Positions 1-61,310 of a stretch of 64,000 nucleotides of DNA are shown piece after piece. Made by a program: the position numbers and the translations under genes. Under the pieces are notes generated by a model. It had not been told where the DNA came from and searched no databases. It saw only the letters and a list, made by a program, of their open reading frames with translations. Position 1 is the first letter of the stretch, and every line of letters starts with the position of its first letter. Source of the DNA: Polymyxa betae A26-41 (taxonomy: Eukaryota > Protista > Endomyxa: Phytomyxea); the NCBI GenBank assembly GCA_003693705.1, contig RBZT01000607.1:1-64000 (forward strand), in the 5' to 3' direction.

Positions 1-736
1 TGGTTTTGCAAGCCTGGTTGTTACAGGTTGGGGATTTGCAGACTTTGCATAGTCCTTTCTGTTTACTGGACGGTGCGGCGACTGGGTATTCTCGTTTTCC
101 GATGTAGTTAAATAATAAATTATTTTATAAGCTCCTAACCCTAAAACCCTCTGTATATTGCCTCCAAGTCTGTTACTGCTCTGAGCTCAGTGCAAACTCT
201 AACAGATTTTGGCAGCAGCCTCTCTAGGAGAAAACCTGTCATACAAACTCGGGGTGAAACCTGGGAAGACACTGTTCATATGGATGCCAATACGGAGCCG
301 AAATGAGCCTAATGGGAGACAATGACTTCGCTCCTGTTTCTCTCTGAATGTAACACAAGAGACAGCAAGACTTTTTATTTCGCAAACTTAGTTAAACAAC
401 GCAGTAGCGGATTAATACATAAAAAAATGCTTCGAGAGGGAATCGTGGCAATCAAACGAGATGTCCGCAGAATTATTTGAATCAGACATGCCGAGAAACT
501 CATTTCGGGCAGAATGAGTTTTAAATAATAAAAAACGGAAAGCAAACCCTAAGACGTTGACATCTATGACCGTGAATCCACACCATCAAACACTCTGTTT
601 CAGCTCGTGTACAGTCGCAGTATTTTTCGCAGCAACTTGGTACAAAGTGCGCAGCAACGCCGTACGCACTACGCAGGTTCGTGACTCGACCGCTGACCTG
701 TGACCATTCCCTGACGCCATTCTCATTTCCACTACA

Positions 737-4240: not shown

Positions 4241-5913
4241 CTAATGGTGCTCTGCAATTCCGTATTCAGAGATACAAAACGAACAAGAACCAATTCGCAG
4301 ACCTTTGATAGCACCCAGATCGGGTGATGGCATAAAAACCGACAGAGCGGAGCCGGAGGTCCAGCACGCCAGCGCCTGAACAACGCTGGGCGCGGTGCGG
4401 AACAACGCCCGGGCAATGCTACAGACTGCGAGAGAAGCGAGTTTGTTGCCGGACTCGACAATCGCGTGCGGGTAGCCGCAATGAATAAACCGCAGGACGG
4501 CCAGATGACTAGTGTTGCGAACGCCAAATTTCTCCGGTTGGTCTCCGATGACTGTTCCGAAGTAGGGCCGCATCTTGAAAGTAATTTTCGTCGAATCCGT
4601 GTGAGGGAAATTGGTTTCATCATAATAATCGACCAAGATCTGGAACAATTCTTCGAGCGATAAGGAGCTAGTACGAACTAAATGAGCAATGAAATTCGCT
4701 GCCAAATTGGTGCGAAGAGCAGCATGTGGCTCATAGGAAAGTGGCAGCAGACAAACGATAATGTATGGATCATCGACATCGTTCTTTGATTGTTCGTTGA
4801 GCTCAGATATGTATCTGTCACAAGAAGTAAGGCCGAATTGAGCAAAGGCCGCAATGAAAATAAAAACTTCATGAAGATAATGATGCTGATCTGAAAAACT
4901 TGGATCCATGAAAAGAATTTTAAAACGAAAGACAGTTTCATAGAAATTGTAAAATTATCGAACTAAATAGCAGAGCGGACGGACTGTTGGAGAATGATAC
5001 GCCACATGTGTAGAATTTCAGTAGGACGGGCACCGGGAACATTACGTAGAACATCTTCATCCAAGGGCTCGGTATAGAATACCACACACGCAGTCCGAGT
5101 TAAAACAGAATCGAATTTGGGCCCGTACGGACATGATCGCCTTTGAAAATACATCAGCCTGTTGATCACAAGTAGCGTTAGCAAAGATTCCGATGAACGT
5201 TGACAATAGCAGACCATCTCGGGAATACATATTCATAGAGAAATGTGGATTATGAATGACCATCAATATTGCAAAGAAGGATAGAATCCACAGAGGTCCA
5301 GATATTGGAATCATCCCTACACAAAAACTGTGTGAATCATTAGAAGTTATAAGAAAGACGAAGTTCACCTTTGTCCGTGAGAAAACAACTCGAGAGCAAA
5401 CTCAGGCGGGAATGTGATATTTTTGATGCTGTACCATGATCAATATCAGGAATAGCTGGCACAAATAGCTGTAAAACTTTTTGGAAGAAATTTTGGAAAA
5501 CATTTTTACAAAAGAGAATCGGAAAATCATCCCTACTTGAGAAGATTATCGATAAGTTTGCACTCTTCGTCACTATCAGCATTGGTAAACGAAGCTGGAG
5601 GAATCTCTCGCAGTGTCTTGGAGAAGTCCCAATCAACTGGTTGTGGTCCCAGGGCGGCCTCCGACAATGCCAGAAGTAACGAATCACCGTCATGCCACGT
5701 TATAGTCGATGAAGCCGGCAGGCTCTGTATCCTATCCCGCAGCGATTCCCATTGTACATTAGAAGATGGTAGCTCCGTATAATGGCGGACATCCCTTATC
5801 AGCTTCACAATATGACCATGCTGATCGGGTTCCGGATTCACAGGTGATGCGGTAAGGCCACTGCGCAGAAGCAGAGTCAGCACGACCCACGCCAGTTGTG
5901 AGGACCAGATCAT
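4241..5913 (-). pseudogene. Probable disrupted secreted-protein gene
   Basis: Signal-peptide-like start MIWSSQLAWVVLTLLLRSGLTA-SP at 5913, then abutting minus-strand ORF pieces (5533-5913, 5340-5550, 4241-4909) separated by frameshifts and stops. No recognisable domain. Confidence 0.4.
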
Positions 5914-27174: not shown

Positions 27175-28720
27175 CGCTAGGGTTAGGGTTTGATAACACT
27201 ACTAATCCATTAAATCCCTCCTTTTGAAAACTGGCAATGAGCACTACCACGTTCATCTGTTGGTTTCCACGAACGACAAACAGATAGAATCAAAACGTGA
27301 TTTCTATATTAGGTCTCGTTAGCTCCAGATGTGTGGCTCAGGCTGGCTTCGTCGCCCTTAATTTGGCAGCCGCCAAATCGTCTGAATTAGGGCTGCGCCG
27401 GGTCGCGGTCGACACCCGCCTTTATCATCAATGCGCCTTTCAAGACAGTACTGAGACTGACAAAACTAATCACGGAATCGCCCAGATGCAGACACACCGC
27501 CCAGACCGTCAAAATGGTTTGCTGAAATCACGACCCTTATAATGAAATCAACAGGTCTCAATGCTACTTCATCATTTATTCATGTTTAGCCTCGATTTAG
27601 CTACTATATAAATATCTCAATATATATATGAGAGCATTCTGTGGTCTAGGGGGTTGCTGCCGTACTATTTCCTCAGCTGTGGTCGTACTGTTTCTAGAGA
27701 GGAAGGGATTTTGGAATGAGTAACTCCGGCTAATGCCAATGAACGTACTGCGAATAGTACGTAGCCATGGACAGTCATAATGATCTCTATTTTCAACAAA
27801 TCAATATATTTTGAGCGATTCTTGTATGGCTGGTTGATATTATGCCTACAAAGACAGTTGATCGATGAGAAGATCACAGTTGTTGAGTGTAGAAATCGGC
27901 AGCTTGGTAACGTAAACTGCGTAGGGTTGTACAAGTAATTCTACTGCCATGAGTACATGTTGTGGTTGGGGACACAATACATGACTATTTAGTAACATAA
28001 ATGCAACGTTATCTTAAACCATAGCCACGCATCCAGTGGCACGCGACTGTCGGAGTTTGCCAGGTTCTAACATTGAGCACAGCTAAACCCAATTGTTAGA
28101 TGAGGAGATCACAGGTACTGAACGTCTTACGCTTTCTTCAAGCCCCTGATCAAAAAGTAAAAGATGATCGAAAACGCCACACCAAGAACTACATAACCCA
28201 CGATATCAATACGATGAAAACCAGCGAATAACGCCGAAGGAACGATGATTAAAGAAGTAGGGCCGGATGCAATCGGTGCCATAGAGAGCAGCGACTGGTC
28301 GGAGTCCGCACTACCACTGTATAATAGATCAGATCAGGGTTCGGAAATGCATCAAATGAACGGAACTGACAGAGGACGAGGACGGACCATGACGGATTGA
28401 AGCAGCAGCTGGACCTGTACGGCCAGGATCTGGAACAGGATGACGGAGCGATTCATGACGATTGAGACGAGAGGAATGGGAAATGAACAGATGGAGGCGG
28501 AGAGAGCAGAATTGTCGGAATGACGCAGCCCGGTCCATAGAACTAGTTCGCGCCATTACAGTAGCTGCGGGTTGCTCATTCGCTCTGGTTGCTGACCGCA
28601 GCAAACGCTGCACACAGCTGCTGGCTAGCATCCGGGCCGGTACGGCTCCGCAACTGCAGCCCTTCACTGAGATTGGCCTCCTGGGCCCGTGACGTGTTCT
28701 GGTCACGCGGGCTACGGAGA
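27175..28720 (+). repeat. Right arm of the large inverted repeat (copy 2), ending in a Helitron-like GC hairpin
   Basis: Inverse of 23815-25160. Internal GAGGAGATCACAG subrepeats. Terminal GCCCGTGAC...GTCACGCGGGC hairpin near 28685-28711. Confidence 0.85.
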
Positions 28721-29075
28721 CTGCTTGACATTGATCTCTCTACCGAATATCTTGGGCAAATAACCACGACCAAATAACCTCTATCGATGTACATAAGAAG
28801 TGCGATTTGTCAATACTTATCTTCTCCCGAAACTATTACGTGAAGATTCTCGTGATTGTGGAATGGCAGCCTGCATTTTTATTGGATTGCATTCACAATA
28901 AAACTTATGGGGAAGTTAGGATGATTTTTATCATCCCTATGTGCAGCCAAATTTTGATGATGGTTTCGGTGTTTATTGGATTCCACGCTTCCACAGCCCA
29001 ATGGGCGACAATCTGTGATTCTCGGAACCAACACGAGAAACTATGAAGTCAACTTGCCCGACAGTAGTGCTAAAA

Positions 29076-30060
29076 GGATTGGATTGGATTGGATTGGATT
29101 GTACTAGCTATTGTGCCTTTCGGCAAGGTGGGCGGCACTTTAACCCTAGTGCGGGGCACAGACCCGAAGGTCCGTGGCTCTCCTAGTAAAAATTCGGAGG
29201 CCTACACCCTTGAGAGGAAAAAGCGAATTTCAGCCCAACGGAGGGCTTAGAGACCTATCAATGACCAGCGACCTGTTGGCCCAACCCTACAGGGAATTGA
29301 ACCCTGTACTCAAACATTGACTCGATCTCATGGTGGTCTCCCAGCTTCTATCACACGCTGTATACTATATTGGACATCCATGTTTGTATGCTTTCTGTAA
29401 CATCTGTCTCATGAGTTTGGGCTGTTGCCATAGGGCTGTATTGAAGTTAATTATCCACAGGGAACTGTAGTTGCGCCTATGGCGTGATAATGCTGTCTTG
29501 AAATATGAACATTTCAGGAGATGCTCCAGTGTCTTATAATAATTACAATATCGACATGTGTTTTCTTGTTCAATTCGCATCTGATGGAGATGATCCCTAC
29601 ACCGAGTATGTCCGGATCGGGCTCTGTTAAGCAGTGGATGATAGTGATATACTCTGATATGTATCGTGTGTCTCCCACGTTTCATGGGATATCGACTGTA
29701 TATGAAGGGGTCTCTGCCGGGGTATCCCCTACAGTGACTCGATCTAATTGCTTTTTCCAGATTAACCTGAAGGTGTGTCCTTGTAACTTTGTGAAGGATT
29801 AACAGAGCAGTCTTTGCCAGTTTGTCTATTTTATCGCTTTCTGGAATAGGTGGTTTGGTTTGACTTGGAACAAAATGGATTTCTACGGAATTATTGGCTG
29901 TTAATATCGCGGTAGTTGATCAGCACAATCTGCCACTGTATCATTGACATATCGAGGTTTATATGGTAACGTAGCAAGCTGTTACATACACGACAGCAGA
30001 CCATCATGTTGCTATGTCAAGTTCAGAGTTCGAGTTTCTTTCAGGATCTTTCTTTAACTG
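29076..30060 (-). mobile_element. 5'-truncated LINE relic with RNase H and C-terminal CCHC knuckle, copy A
   Basis: VEIHFVPSQTKPPIPESDKIDKLAKTA (RNase H end) and RARSGH...CRYC...TLEHLLKC (ORF2 C-terminal zinc knuckle), then the 3' UTR and a (CAATC)5 tail at 29076-29100. Confidence 0.85.
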
Positions 30061-30130
30061 GATTGAATTCCTGACTTCCAAAGGCCGGCGAGTGCGCAGC
30101 CTTCAATCCGCCGGCGGATAGTAAAATTAA

Positions 30131-30725
30131 GAGTGCGTTTGGCAACCACGCAAAACTACAGTTTTGCCTCAGTTTTGTTCCGAAACGGTAGTTTTCGGCA
30201 GTTTTGCAAAAAATGCGCGTTTGGCAACCAAAACTGAGGCTCAGTTTCAGTTTTCAAAACTGCACCAAAACTGTAGTTTTGAAACGGAGCTCAGAGCTCC
30301 GTTTTGGTTCAGTTTTGAAACTAAACTCGAATTGCGAATAAAATTTCAACGTTTTCTCACATAACTGTTGTTATGGATTTCGTAGAGCTGATTACAGTCT
30401 TTGTAACAGCCTGGTACGTCACCGTGTATCTGCTGAAAGAGCCATGTCGCACCTCCAAAGTCCAGGCCAAATCGATACTTTAGTGCGAATGGGCATTTTC
30501 TACATCGTCGGCAAGCCATGGATCTGTTTGAGCACCGATGAGTCAAGAATATTGCAGATGGTTGCTTTTCTCAAAGTTGCTAATATTTTATTTGGCAGCA
30601 AAACTAGTTTTTGAAGTGCGTCTGGCAACAAAACTGTACAAAACCTAAAACTGTGGTGGTCCCCGCAGAAAACGGTAGTTTTAAGAAAACTACAGTTTTG
30701 TAATCATTTGTTGCCAAACGCACTC
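30131..30725. mobile_element. PIF/Harbinger-type (Tourist-like) MITE, 595 bp
   Basis: 16-bp TIR GAGTGCGTTTGGCAAC / GTTGCCAAACGCACTC, TAA TSD on both sides, and subterminal AAAACT(A/G)(C/T)AGTTTT repeats. Confidence 0.92.
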
Positions 30726-31184
30726 TAACTGATCTGAGTCTACTTCGATCTAAGCCACGGAATATTCGAATTTTAGACTTGATCCACTAAACCCTATACC
30801 CTAACCCTATTTTTCCAAACTTGTTTGGAGATGTCATTGTGATTTGGACACAGAAAGCTGTCTCGTTAGCGGCCAAATTTAACTTGAGTTCAGCGCTGGC
30901 ACGACATAAAGATCAAAATCGCATCCGAACAACAAATTCGAGTCCTGGAATCAAATGTCAATGATCTGTTCGGGCGTATTCACAGACTAATACCAAAGTT
31001 TCGCTTTATGAAATGGAGTATCATGCCATTCCTCTGAGTCTGACCGAATTCCTGATATGAGCAAGGGTTTCGACATCGAAACACCCATCTCAAAATTCCT
31101 TCCAAAGAGCGTGGTCTTTGTTACCATCTCCGTTTCGGAGGCACTTGAGAGCCAGAACATCGAAGTCGTCAAAGGTGGTCAATC

Positions 31185-31560
31185 ATGAGCCTCGAATTGT
31201 AGCTAGCTACATATCTGCATATTGATATGAGAACAATCTGTGGTCTGGGAGTTGCTGTCGTACTATCTCCGCGGTTGTGGTCGTACTATGTCTACAGTGG
31301 AATGGATTCTGTCATTCTGGAATGAGGCTGGCCGTGATTGCGGTTAATGACAATGAAAGCAATGCATGCGAATAGTACGTAGTCATGGACAGTCATGGTG
31401 ATCTCTATTGCCAACAAATCAATTTATTTTGAGCGATTCTTGTATAGCTGGTTGATGTTGTCCCTACAAATACAGTTGATTGATGAGAAGATCACAGCCA
31501 CTCAACATCTTAGCAGCAACTAAAACCCAACCGTTAGATGAGGAGATCACTGTCACTGAG
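31185..31560 (+). repeat. Third, partial copy of the dispersed repeat
   Basis: Direct similarity to 27580-27880 (TCTGTGGTCT...GTGGTCGTACT...GCGAATAGTACGTAG...GGACAGTCAT...GATGAGAAGATCACAG). Confidence 0.9.
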
Positions 31561-51180: not shown

Positions 51181-52115
51181 GCGACCAGCCAGCGACACCA
51201 TGCAAGTGAGTCGTCTACAGTAGGTACTCGTTTGCTTCCCGTCAGCGACAAACTTGGTGCTCTCTGAGTGGGTTGCGCTTCGGTTCTGTCTGTCTATCAA
51301 GCATGCAATCGGTTCGATGGACGTCCGATGCAGTTGCTTAGTGCTGGCTTGTTTTTCTGGTCGATGAAGGAATGTTGATGCCGAACTACTTCCCTGCTCT
51401 GCCGGTTTGAGTTGGTAGGCTTCGGTAATGTCGCGAAGAAAAGCGTTCTGTTGCTCGACCAGCCTTTTATTGGCATTCTGATACATTGTTCTTTCTGAAG
51501 TCATGAAGCAGCTTTGCATTCGTTGGCCTTCTATCATGCTTGCAAAAATGCGATTATTTTCTCCACAAATGGTGTAGGAATATTACTTCGTTTTTTAAGT
51601 CATGAGGCTCAGTATGTATTTTCTAAAGATACTGGACAATAATTTGTGAATAAAATGAGTGGCTGGAAATTTCCCAACATTCTCTCTCTGATTTTTTATA
51701 TTTGCTGACGATGATTCGTATCGAAATCAGCTGCTTGACGATATCGGTATAGTATTCGCGCACCGAGTAAACGTTAATCACCATGACGGCTACGACGCGA
51801 GCTACGACTTTTTTGCTGAAATTGAAACCCTGGATTCTGAACAACAACGTTTAAGGTTTTCAACGAATAGACCTGCGATGTGCACTTTGCTCAGGCTGCT
51901 GCAATCCAAAGTTCCGTTCTAGCTGGTTGCATTGCTATGTTCTTTATATTTCCAACTTTATGTTTTCCCACTAAATATTGCTGCAGCTTGATGCGCTTCC
52001 TGTTCGCTCGAATCCCTAAAATCGTCGCAGAACGACGTCACAACACTTGTTCGACTAATGGTAATATGCCACTGCATTTCGTGGACTTGTTCGACCGCCC
52101 TGAACGCAGAATTAT

Positions 52116-52240
52116 CTCCGAAAATGTTAAGTAGGAGAACCTGGACCTCGGTTCAGGCCCCGCACTAGGGTTATTGTGCCGCCCACTCCGCCGAACGGTG
52201 CGAACAAATAGTGCAATCCAATCCAAATCCAATCCAATCC
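52116..52240 (+). mobile_element. LINE 3'-end fragment (copy C) with (CAATC)n tail
   Basis: TAGGAGA...CCCCGCACTAGGGTTA..GTGCCGCCCAC...TAGTGCAATCCAATCC matches the reverse complement of 29076-29190. Confidence 0.85.
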
Positions 52241-57600: not shown

Positions 57601-60278
57601 CAGACTACGAAATTCCGATCACAGACTATCGTTCCTTCGTTTGGAATTGAATCCATTCCAATCTCTACGATTGTCAGAGCCGCAATGCTGAAAGGGTTTA
57701 TTTTGGCTATGCAAGATGCCGCAAAATTACTCGATGGCCGGCTTGACGACCTTCTAGACGACATCATGAAATCCACCGCAGCAGCAGTTGATTCCGTTCC
57801 AAATTAAATCTTCAGTATTCGCCACGACCTCCATTCCGCCTGCGTTGAAATATAACCAAGTCGGTAGCCAGAGCCTACGACTGCATCTGGAAGGCAATCC
57901 CAAAGCGACGACAGTTGGGTCGCAAATTGTGACCCCCAAAAATGATCCGGCATCTCCGCCTGTCCGAAAAAGTACAATAACCAAAAACATCGCGGTTATC
58001 ATTACTTCAAAATGGTTATAGGTGCTCAGAAACAGACGATATCATCCGGCAACGTCCTCAAAAAACCATTAGAAAGTCCAGGAGACCGCCAGTTCCAGTT
58101 TGACAAAAAAACTGAAACTCGTGGCTGCGTGCTTCCATATTTCGGGGAAAAAGGGCAGACTGTATCAACATGGACTGCCTTTGGGGATCTTGTCCGAGAC
58201 AAAATCAATCTTAGCGATGAGGGCTGGAAATCAACTTGCAGCAAGCATCTCGCTAATATCAGTGACAAAGGAGACCCATCCCCGTGCAGTCTATGGTTAA
58301 AAAGTTCAAAAACAAAACCCAAAAAGTTCCAGATGCTGCTGGACACGTCCGAACAGGTCAAACAGGTTGCGTGCAAATCTGCGCCTACACCGACGCGTGC
58401 TCACGCCAATGTGAGCAAAAAACACCAGTTAACCGTTATACCAATCAATTGTATAAATCACCACTAATATGATTCACATAGGCACACAATTGGGGGATAC
58501 AATTACAAAAACGGGAGGAGCGAATAGAGCTGTTTTGTATCAACGAAACGAACAACTTCAAGAGTGACGATAGAACCAAAGATAATGGTCATCCGTACAA
58601 GCGTTCTGGTTTTAAAACCGCGACGCTCTTTCGAAAACCCTGCAATCAAACTGGGACCCCAGCCGTCAGTTTAAGTCAGACTTTAAGCCCGCGCCATCTG
58701 GGTGTTATAGCGGGAGTCAACGAAGAACTTAGATAAAATTCATTTTCAAAGGCGACCGACTTTTAGAAGAATTTCATCTGTCGAGGGAGCGAATTAAGGA
58801 AAACACCGTCACGGGATGGCAATATTTTTTTCTTGTCGTAGGGTTAAATACTTTTAATTTATTGATTTTAGTTAGCGGCTAAGAGCGAAACCTATGGCGG
58901 CCGAAAACGGCGTCAGCCCGCAGGCGGGAGAACAGGCGGGCCCGAAAGTCGGGCATCGAACGGTTTCTTCCTACGCTCCGTTAAGGCCGTTATGACCGAT
59001 CATCAAGCCCAGGCTCTGCCAGGAACCGATCAGGCCCAACAGAGGCCTTTTCGGACTTCTACAGAGAGCTATTTTACTCAGGATCTCAACACGCCGCAAG
59101 AGTTAGTCGGTAACGCCTCCGCCGACCGACAAGACTGTCTATAACCGAAGAGGGGAGGTGCTGCCTGTAAACACAATCTGCTGGCAGTATTATCCCGCCT
59201 GGAACTGCTCGACCAGACAAACGATGATCGACAAGTTGTCGTCTTCAACGTACCGCAATGTGTCATTAAATCTAAAGGATTACTCGCCCTATGTTCGGGA
59301 CCAAAACCAGCCCAGGCCTTTCCTATGTACTGGCTACCGGACTACGTAATCGGGCGGCGGGTACGAAATCCAGTGGCTATTCTCATTAAGGAGGCAAGCC
59401 TAGAGGAGAAAGAGAGAAGAAATTTTTTATACAGGATGCAACTCCCGCCCGATAACTCGAGAAACATTCTTGTCGACATGAACTTGCCCCGAAGTCTTGA
59501 GACGGCCTTGAGTTAGAACGGCTTTCGTCAGGACATCAGCGATCATCTTCTGCCCGTCACAGAGACTTGGCAGTTGGGAGGCGGCCAGAGCGTGAGAAGA
59601 TTTTTGAAGAATCGATTTAAAGATTTGAGGAATGTCTTCTTTCAGTTTTCCAATTTTATCCAAGTAAAATTATATGATTTTTACCTTTGCAGAATACTAG
59701 AATCTCGTGACGGATATCACGAAGTGACTCTACTTGGTAGAGCTGAATACAAAATCTTGGAATGAGATAGTTTAAACAACCCGAGTGGTGTAGTACCATC
59801 AGCCCTGCTCACTCTTCTCTTAACCTCCAGGGACTAGCATCGAAATTCGGGCATCGAACAAATCTGGATTAAACACGATAAAGAACATTCTAGATCACGA
59901 ATGGAAAGCTGCAAACAGGAAGTGCGCCGATATATCCAAACCTTAACTGTCTATATCTTCCATAATTAACTGTACGTATAATACAATCAGTCTTGTGTAC
60001 CTAGGGTTTAGGGGTTACGGGGATTTATGGAGGATTTTGTTATCGGTTGGTATGTTTAACAAGGTAACTGTGTCCTGCTACATTATGGTCTTGCACTGGA
60101 TCGTTTTTGGTTTGTATCGAGTAAGCTCGGTTGAACCTTTTAGCGTATCCAAGGATTGGGTACACAAATGCGATTGCGAAAGAATGAAAAACCCAACCCC
60201 GAAACCCTAACTCTTGTTGTTTTCATTCTTCTTCCTCTTGTTTGCTCAGCTCACAGACACATCTCGTCGTATCGACTT

Positions 60279-60398
60279 AAAAACATATGAACTCGACAAT
60301 TCCGTGAGGGGTCGGGCCCAGCGCAAGGGTAAATGCGTCGCCAACCTCACCCATTATATGGGTGTAACATCTAGATAAATCCAATCCAATCCAGTCCA
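60279..60398 (+). mobile_element. 120-nt retroposed unit (copy D; divergent LINE 3' end or SINE) with 13-bp TSD
   Basis: TSD GTCGTATCGACTT at 60266-60278 and 60399-60411, an AATCCAATCCAATCCAGTCC tail, and the same hairpin order as copies A-C. Confidence 0.85.
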
Positions 60399-61310
60399 GT
60401 CGTATCGACTTGCGTTTATTGAGGTCGTCTAATACGTATAAAAAGCAAGATAGCAAGGTTTATTGAAAACTGCGATTTAATAGAGATCATGAATGTCTTG
60501 CAGAGCAAGTACGCATTGATGCAGGAGTGAACGAGTGCGCGGTTGGGACGGCTCAGTAAAAAGTATCCCAACATATATTCGATCAATAATTTGCAATCCA
60601 GTTTGAATACAAAATACATGAAAATTCGCCGACGAATTCCTATATTGTGTTGATGCTTTATACGAAGAGCCAGATACGGAATCTTAAATGCAGGTCTGAA
60701 GGATGACGGAGATGTTTGGCTGTTGAGGCGGCATCAGCAGATCTCACTCCCATTCTAACTTCAATAGTATATTGAAATCCGTGATGCGTCCATCAGGAAT
60801 CAAATCGGGCTCTGCAATATCGGGCCCAATAAACCCACTCTGCTGAACTCGGGTGTATCCGGGGACCAGGTCAAGGTGATAGTCCGGCCATCTGCTTTAA
60901 ATAGCAACCTACACGGTCGAACAACCACCGAGAACTTCATAAAATGGTCGTGGGTGTCGGAGCGATCGCCTTAGCACGAGACTCGAGGCGGTGACAGACC
61001 ATGGATGTTGCCGGGACTGAACGACAAGGTCAGCACGCCAGCGGCCATAGCCAAAAACCGCGGCCAGAAGCGACATCTAGATGGGATGCAGCGTGGCGCC
61101 GTTCCTGCTGGATGAGAGAAGAGTATGTCGCTCTTTCGTAACGGAGATGATGGGGACAGCGGAGCTGCAAGTCTCCATCTCTCGAATCGGTCGCGGAAGC
61201 GTGGCCTCCTTTCAGACTTCGAAAGTTCTCATCTTTTTTTAAAACAATTTTCTGAGTTTCGTTGCGGAGTGAGTGACCCTCACGGGGGCGCAGCCCACCA
61301 TCTCTTAATA

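Follow-up and report, generated by a model that had tools for sequence, protein, structure and literature searches.

A covarying four-hairpin RNA at the 3′ end of a LINE lineage, probably from the plasmodiophorid Polymyxa betae

The window, a stretch of 64,000 nucleotides, contains four retroposon copies (A to D) ending in a structured RNA module and short pentamer repeats. An earlier note on this DNA had described one layout for all four; its coordinates, strands, stems, loops and linkers were all verified on the sense strands, with one mismatch in hairpin 1 of copy B. Hairpin 1 is followed by CC (within CCC(C/A)), hairpin 2, CGCC (within CGCC(C/A)AC), hairpin 3, UAG and the tail (CAATC)n, i.e., (CAAUC)n in RNA. 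The tail pattern had nine matches in the window vs 0.04 expected. A fourth hairpin, P0 (CUCC...GGAG), lies upstream and belongs to the motif; it was absent from the earlier note. Hairpin 1 is CCUGGAC-CUCG-GUUCAGG in copy C and CUCGAC...GUCGGG in copy D, and hairpin 2 reads GCAC(U)...(A)GUGC or GCGCA...UGCGU with the loop AGGGU... in the four copies. The features are given below together with the scores of a covariance model seeded with 12 A/B-type copies, on which P0 and hairpins 1 to 3 (H1, H2, H3) were imposed.

29076..29996, minus strand: copy A, a 5′-truncated LINE of subfamily F1, ~920 nt, comprising the end of the ORF2 frame, 3′ UTR, module and tail (homology to genomic copies; tblastn); 144.3 bits
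29289-29307, minus strand: T-arm/B-box-like hairpin ACAGGGUUCAAUUCCCUGU in the 3′ UTR of copy A
29281-29287, minus strand: "anti-tail" GGGUUGG of copy A, complementary to the tail CCAAUCC
29180..29199, minus strand: P0 of copy A, CUCC/GGAG with a GAA...AGUA loop (fold and covariation across subfamilies)
29157..29176, minus strand: hairpin 1 of copy A, CACGGACC-UUCG-GGUCUGUG (all 8 pairs changed on both sides), the same in copy B but for its mismatch
29153-29156, minus strand: linker CCCC after hairpin 1 of copy A
29131..29152, minus strand: hairpin 2 of copy A, GCACU-AGGGUUAA-AGUGC, with the invariant CGCC (29131-29134)
29114..29125, minus strand: hairpin 3 of copy A, UGCC-GAAA-GGCA, then ...CUAG with UAG at 29104-29106
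29076..29101, minus strand: (CAAUC)5 tail of copy A (sequence reading, tail pattern)
25203..25325, minus strand: copy B, module and tail, subfamily F1, somewhat decayed (model match 25208-25325, 132.9 bits)
52109..52240, plus strand: copy C, a 5′-truncated LINE copy of subfamily F2, ~132 nt (model match 52113-52229, 83.8 bits)
60279..60399, plus strand: copy D, 121 nt, 5′-truncated, subfamily F3, beginning within P0 (model match 60288-60392, 44.4 bits)
60267..60278 and 60400-60411, plus strand: the two copies of the target-site duplication tcgtatcgactt of copy D, 12-13 nt (direct reading)

Homology of copy A to other genomic copies spans positions 1205-2011 of the query (window 29190-31200, minus strand), tblastn found RNase H-like pieces upstream of its tail, and its translation contains the C-terminal Cys/His motif CRYCNYYKTLEHLLKC. 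A spliced gene immediately downstream of copy A (window 27556-28920, minus strand) is visible in contigs of X1, the only run holding the locus; it has two short introns, 27787-27849 and 28317-28370 (GT..AG on the minus strand), and its poly(A) end lies at 27556. Since these contigs look spliced, X1 is probably an RNA run. An unrelated dispersed repeat occupies window positions ~30123-30732; contigs C730, C896 and C646 hold copies of it at 94-96% identity.

Across the whole genome assembly (27 Mb in 1001 contigs), a BLAST-level search recovered 31 copies like A, B or C and 19 like D. The covariance-model search proposed in the earlier note gave at least 113 matches in the genome (E<=0.01) from the 150 candidates scored out of 8263. 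Together with 60 further loci, the copies sort into about 12 subfamilies, F1-F9 and sub-variants, all of which keep the same layout: P0, H1 abutting CC-NN, H2, CG(C/U)C-N, H3 and then 8-13 nt that close in (N)UAG-NNN before (AAUCC)n. The module thus delimited makes up the last 110-130 nt before the tail, and every copy carries two to five short tandem repeats, (AAUCC)2-5, at its 3′ terminus. H2 consists of 5 bp and an 8-nt loop, NNGGNNAN across subfamilies, so that the AGGGU loop previously described as invariant is constant in the four window copies and not in the family at large. Within the module, hairpin 2 and CGCC form the best-conserved core. The stems vary as follows.

P0: CUCC/GGAG, UCUCU/AGAGA, GCUUC/GAAGC, CCCC/GGGG, GGCUCU/AGAGUC
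H1: CACGGACC/GGUCUGUG, CCUGGAC/GUUCAGG, CUCGAC/GUCGGG, CUGAUAG/CUAUCAG, CUGGAAA/UUUCCAG, and a 15-bp stem in F4
H2: GCACU/AGUGC, GCGCA/UGCGU, GCGCG/CGCGC, GUGCU/AGCAC, GCGUU/AGCGC, GCGCU/AGCGC
H3: UGCC/GGCA, CACC/GGUG, CACUCAUAU/AUAUGGGUG, ACGCCCA/UGGGCGU, GUUGA/UCAAC

The suggestion that a covarying multi-hairpin RNA lies at the retroposon 3′ end was confirmed in an alignment of 103 distinct copies to the covariance model. Here, 88.8% of the cells pair, vs 73.8 +/- 0.6% in shuffled alignments and no more than 56.6% when partners are slid. Changes on both sides were found in 19 of the 21 pairs, and 308 cells were changed on both sides vs 86 +/- 8 in shuffled alignments, a number that none of 500 shuffles reached, although the kinship of the subfamilies makes these shuffle statistics overstate independence: copies decay neutrally within related subfamilies, which leaves roughly a dozen lineages, rather than a hundred, as the effective sample. 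All four helices covary strongly. Because this alignment was fitted to the structure and leans to the model's own pairing, the H2 core was also extracted by sequence anchors alone (CC-NN, 18 nt, CG[CU]C). The anchors were present in 70 of 106 rows, and at least four of the five pairs were formed in 60 of these 70. In a gapless MAFFT alignment of 50 distinct H2 cores, three of them from metagenomes, which was not structure-fitted, 84.8% of the H2 cells were paired and three of the five pairs changed on both sides (A-U/G-C 25/21; U-A/A-U/G-C 21/9/4; C-G/U-A 35/5). CC, the loop nucleotide G19 and C-G-x-C were invariant in this alignment, and G18 was present in >90% of rows; the invariant unpaired nucleotides of the whole fold are few, namely CC, GG, A, CGCC and UAG. 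Single-sequence MFE folds recovered P0, H1, H2 and H3 each independently in most subfamilies. MAFFT with RNAalifold on the three window families recovered hairpin 3 alone, because hairpin 1 was out of register; on F1 and F2, RNAalifold proposed an alternative, CCC:GGG with GUG:CAC, which was rejected, as F3 does not keep the pairing.

A pseudoknot between the loop GGGU and a downstream ACYY, also suggested earlier, did not hold up: the complementarity exists in the four copies and within F1-F3 only, and is not conserved family-wide. In F4-F9, H3 follows directly after CGCCN, so that the proposed ACYY partner is the 5′ strand of H3, the partner columns being GUU of that hairpin. The pseudoknot helix shows one-sided changes only, and in 16 of 50 rows its pair 20-34 is not formed. 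Besides this ACYY, the loop GG has candidate partners in the 3′ CGCC and in the 5′ CC, for which the third pair is C-G in 25 rows, U-G in seven, A-U in two, U-A in two and unpaired in 14. Several MFE folds also contain a GGC/GCC helix that closes H2. All of these candidate pairings, the GGC/GCC helix included, involve near-invariant columns.

The motif is the 3′-terminal module of one lineage of LINEs (non-LTR retrotransposons). This lineage encodes an AP-type endonuclease (APE), a reverse transcriptase (RT), RNase H and a C-terminal Cys/His motif. In the copy L127, which has a few frameshifts, these parts follow each other in this order and are succeeded by a 3′ UTR of ~330 nt, the module and (AAUCC)3. 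APE, RT and RNase H were found upstream of the module also in L047/L033, L128, L131 and the metagenomic L155, and RT with RNase H upstream of F1, F2 and F3 tails (L046, L047/L033, L032, L131). The RT had no sequence-level relative in PDB at E<=0.001. Variable 5′ truncation and target-site duplications (12-13 nt in copy D, 13 nt in L031) are marks of target-primed reverse transcription.

A protein match with 93% identity is recorded as a partial protein of Beta vulgaris. Polymyxa betae is a root parasite of sugar beet, and the host of the LINE lineage is probably this plasmodiophorid protist. To look beyond this genome, metagenome contigs were scanned for UAG-NNN-(AAUCC)3 and then with the covariance model, which yielded three loci with a full module (L155, L141 and L191); other metagenomic RT relatives mostly lack a 3′ UTR on their contigs or are without a DNA record. 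L155 is a nearly intact LINE with APE, RT and RNase H that shares 65% RT identity with L127 and has new stems, H2 being GUGCU[GGGGAUAA]AGCAC. The RT of L132, on a JGI contig, is merely 40% identical, and this element keeps CUCC...GGAG, UCCG[UACAAU]CGGA, CCUU, GCUAG[UUGGAA]CUAGC, CGCC and H3. Thus, soil-metagenome LINEs at both 65% and 40% RT identity retain the module core, which by comparison with L132 consists of CC-NN, H2 and CGCC. The tail of L132 is (AAAU)n instead of (AAUCC)n, which makes the module older than the tail repeat. Several other metagenome loci (L167, L172, L201/L211 and L175) end in UAGNCC(AAUCC)n after unrelated upstream sequence; the pentamer tail may be shared with other retroposon families in other organisms.

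By analogy with well-studied elements, we consider it likely that the module is the RT-recognition 3′ tail of a "stringent" LINE, recognised by its own ORF2 protein. UnaL2 and ZfL2 have a conserved stem-loop at their extreme 3′ end, followed by short tandem repeats; the stem-loop is recognised by the cognate ORF2 protein and is required for retrotransposition, and in stringent LINEs the folded tail is what the ORF2 protein recognises on its own RNA, with reverse transcription beginning on the terminal repeats (PMC1636434, PMC4176376). The earlier note had likewise considered an RT-recognition RNA, which fits the position of the module at the end of APE/RT/RNase H LINEs, the binding being what we infer. 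Architecture, covariation, position at LINE ends, 5′ truncations and target-site duplications were observed directly; the ORF2 protein would bind the folded module in cis, most likely contacting hairpin 2 and its invariant flanks, and the nicked target DNA would then prime reverse transcription on the tail repeats, possibly with slippage. The module resembles the L2-clade elements UnaL2 (eel) and ZfL2 (zebrafish) and their SINEs in its 3′ position, repeat tail and covarying stems. In contrast to the single hairpin of ~36 nt in UnaL2, it has four hairpins and a conserved core, and unlike UnaL2 and ZfL2, the LINE described here is a protist element with an RNase H.

The R2 3′ UTR RNA also forms a multi-helix fold, conserved in structure more than in sequence, that is bound by its own RT to start target-primed reverse transcription. 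R2, however, differs from the LINE described here in having a restriction-like endonuclease, a site-specific 28S target and a fold of ~250 nt without a repeat tail.

A SINE partner is a classic hallmark of stringent LINEs, and none was confirmed among the candidates L031, L017, L019, L029 and L064. F2 at first sight resembled a SINE-like element of 250 nt whose 5′ end is fixed, a reading that we rejected because RT and RNase H lie upstream in its LINE copies (L017/L032, L019/L047 and L029/L033; L047 and L033 share 96.6% identity over 3 kb). The 250-nt "short element" in L031 is likewise a 5′-truncated F2 LINE copy and not a SINE. In L064, the tRNA-Ala next to the F3 tail is a gene that has a T5 terminator of its own, directly after which the truncated F3 insertion begins.

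Transfer RNA genes occur in five of 55 tail-bearing loci of ~3 kb (L014:1012-1082; L062:262-337 and 2655-2730; L064:1578-1651; L066:873-944). This proximity may reflect insertion near tRNA genes, or chance. The TRE elements of Dictyostelium are protist APE-type LINEs that insert near tRNA genes, and their structured 3′ end (the C-module) is needed for retrotransposition; the likeness is a descriptive one, and the five loci give only a hint of targeting to tRNA genes.

Sequence further upstream bears on another reading, that the structure serves the RNA otherwise than in RT recognition, e.g., in stability, nuclear export or translation, or as a tRNA-like domain for host tRNA enzymes or pol III factors. 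Every readable 3′ UTR contains the B-box/T-arm-like motif GGUUC(A/G)ANUCC, 85-101 nt upstream of P0 (farther in F3), and 16 nt after it the heptamer GG(A/G)UUGG, an exact complement of the tail CCAAUCC (window 29281-29307, minus strand; L047:2830-2860; L127 ~395-425, minus strand; L155 ~4830-4856). In F1 and F2 the heptamer is followed by GCCA, resembling a tRNA 3′ end, and a D-arm-like hairpin, AAGCUGGGAAACCAG, lies farther upstream. The conserved motif and this hairpin speak for such a role, as do the several copies that adjoin tRNA genes. However, ARAGORN found no tRNA in the window, L001, L031, L046, L047 or L127, Rfam returned nothing tRNA-like above threshold, and of the features of a tRNA or SINE head only the B-box consensus was present, with no cloverleaf. 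In F7 and F9 the T-stem pairs poorly. Moreover, L132 keeps the module from P0 to hairpin 3, and its UTR of 150 nt lacks a T-arm motif, which makes the module, not the tRNA-like part, the lineage-wide constant. Such a role apart from RT recognition therefore appears unlikely to us.

The heptamer suggests a further possibility within RT recognition, namely that the (AAUCC)n tail is held by the anti-tail GG(A/G)UUGG and/or the GG-containing H2 loop in a helix that positions the template, like the top half of a tRNA or as in telomerase. We regard this as rather unlikely; if true, the RT would receive the 3′ end of its template from this helix, by which the repeat tail could also be set or regenerated. 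ViennaRNA gave the heptamer:tail pairing a probability of ~0.98 in two sequence contexts, 0.23 in one and ~0 in two. In most subfamilies the H2 loop is complementary to the tail as well, and L132 keeps the loop despite its different tail. Among 76 unrelated metagenome loci with (AATCC)3, the heptamer occurred upstream in two only, which are apparently unrelated. The anti-tail beside the T-arm-like motif is a lead and not a finding.

A self-cleaving ribozyme, or another 3′-end processing signal that trims read-through transcripts, would fit the compact multi-helical fold with its few invariant unpaired nucleotides, and LINE transcripts must somehow shed downstream flanking RNA. The Rfam comparison called for by the earlier note matched no family to the motif, ribozymes included, and hence gave no ribozyme signal: the 4227 models produced no match at gathering score in the whole window, and searches at E<=10 or E<=1 with short stretches (copy A, L127 and ten subfamily loci) returned chance-level hits to mascRNA, RAGATH-12 and SNORD36 only. 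Hammerhead, HDV-like, twister, pistol, hatchet, UnaL2 and R2 models had no match in these searches. HDV-like and hammerhead retrotransposon ribozymes are likewise small structured RNAs inside retroelements, yet they have defined catalytic cores, and no such core was found here; known examples in retrotransposons act at the 5′ end, and others belong to Penelope-like and SINE-like elements. The tail length of two to five repeats is what priming or slippage would give. The module precedes the tail, and each insertion receives a copy of it, so that cleavage within the module would destroy the template. We hold ribozyme or processing activity to be very unlikely.

That the hairpins are chance structures without function, kept by shared ancestry of recent copies, would agree with the 90-98% identity of copies within subfamilies and is scarcely credible in view of stems that change on both sides between subfamilies with pairing kept, and of a layout that survives down to 40% RT identity.

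Recognition by the RT, the reading that we favour, places the module among elements of a known kind. The RNA family itself is real, well supported and so far uncatalogued; the earlier description as new is right for the family, which has no Rfam match, and not for the kind of element, which is long established (PMC1636434, PMC4176376). The RNA is thus a new and unusually elaborate member of this kind, in Rhizaria, for which the literature searched describes no LINE 3′ recognition. The current picture of LINE function is unchanged by it. As a well-delimited RNA of ~120 nt with rich natural covariation and an invariant core, tied to an RNase H LINE lineage from Rhizaria, the module is a candidate new Rfam family and a handy substrate for binding and structural work on template choice by APE-type LINEs. 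It would also help to annotate repeats in plasmodiophorid genomes and in their contaminant contigs within host assemblies.

At one locus (L007:300-360, contig C156), an F1 tail directly abuts telomere-like CCCTAAA/CCCTAA repeats, beyond which comes a second copy's inverted (GGATT)n tail.
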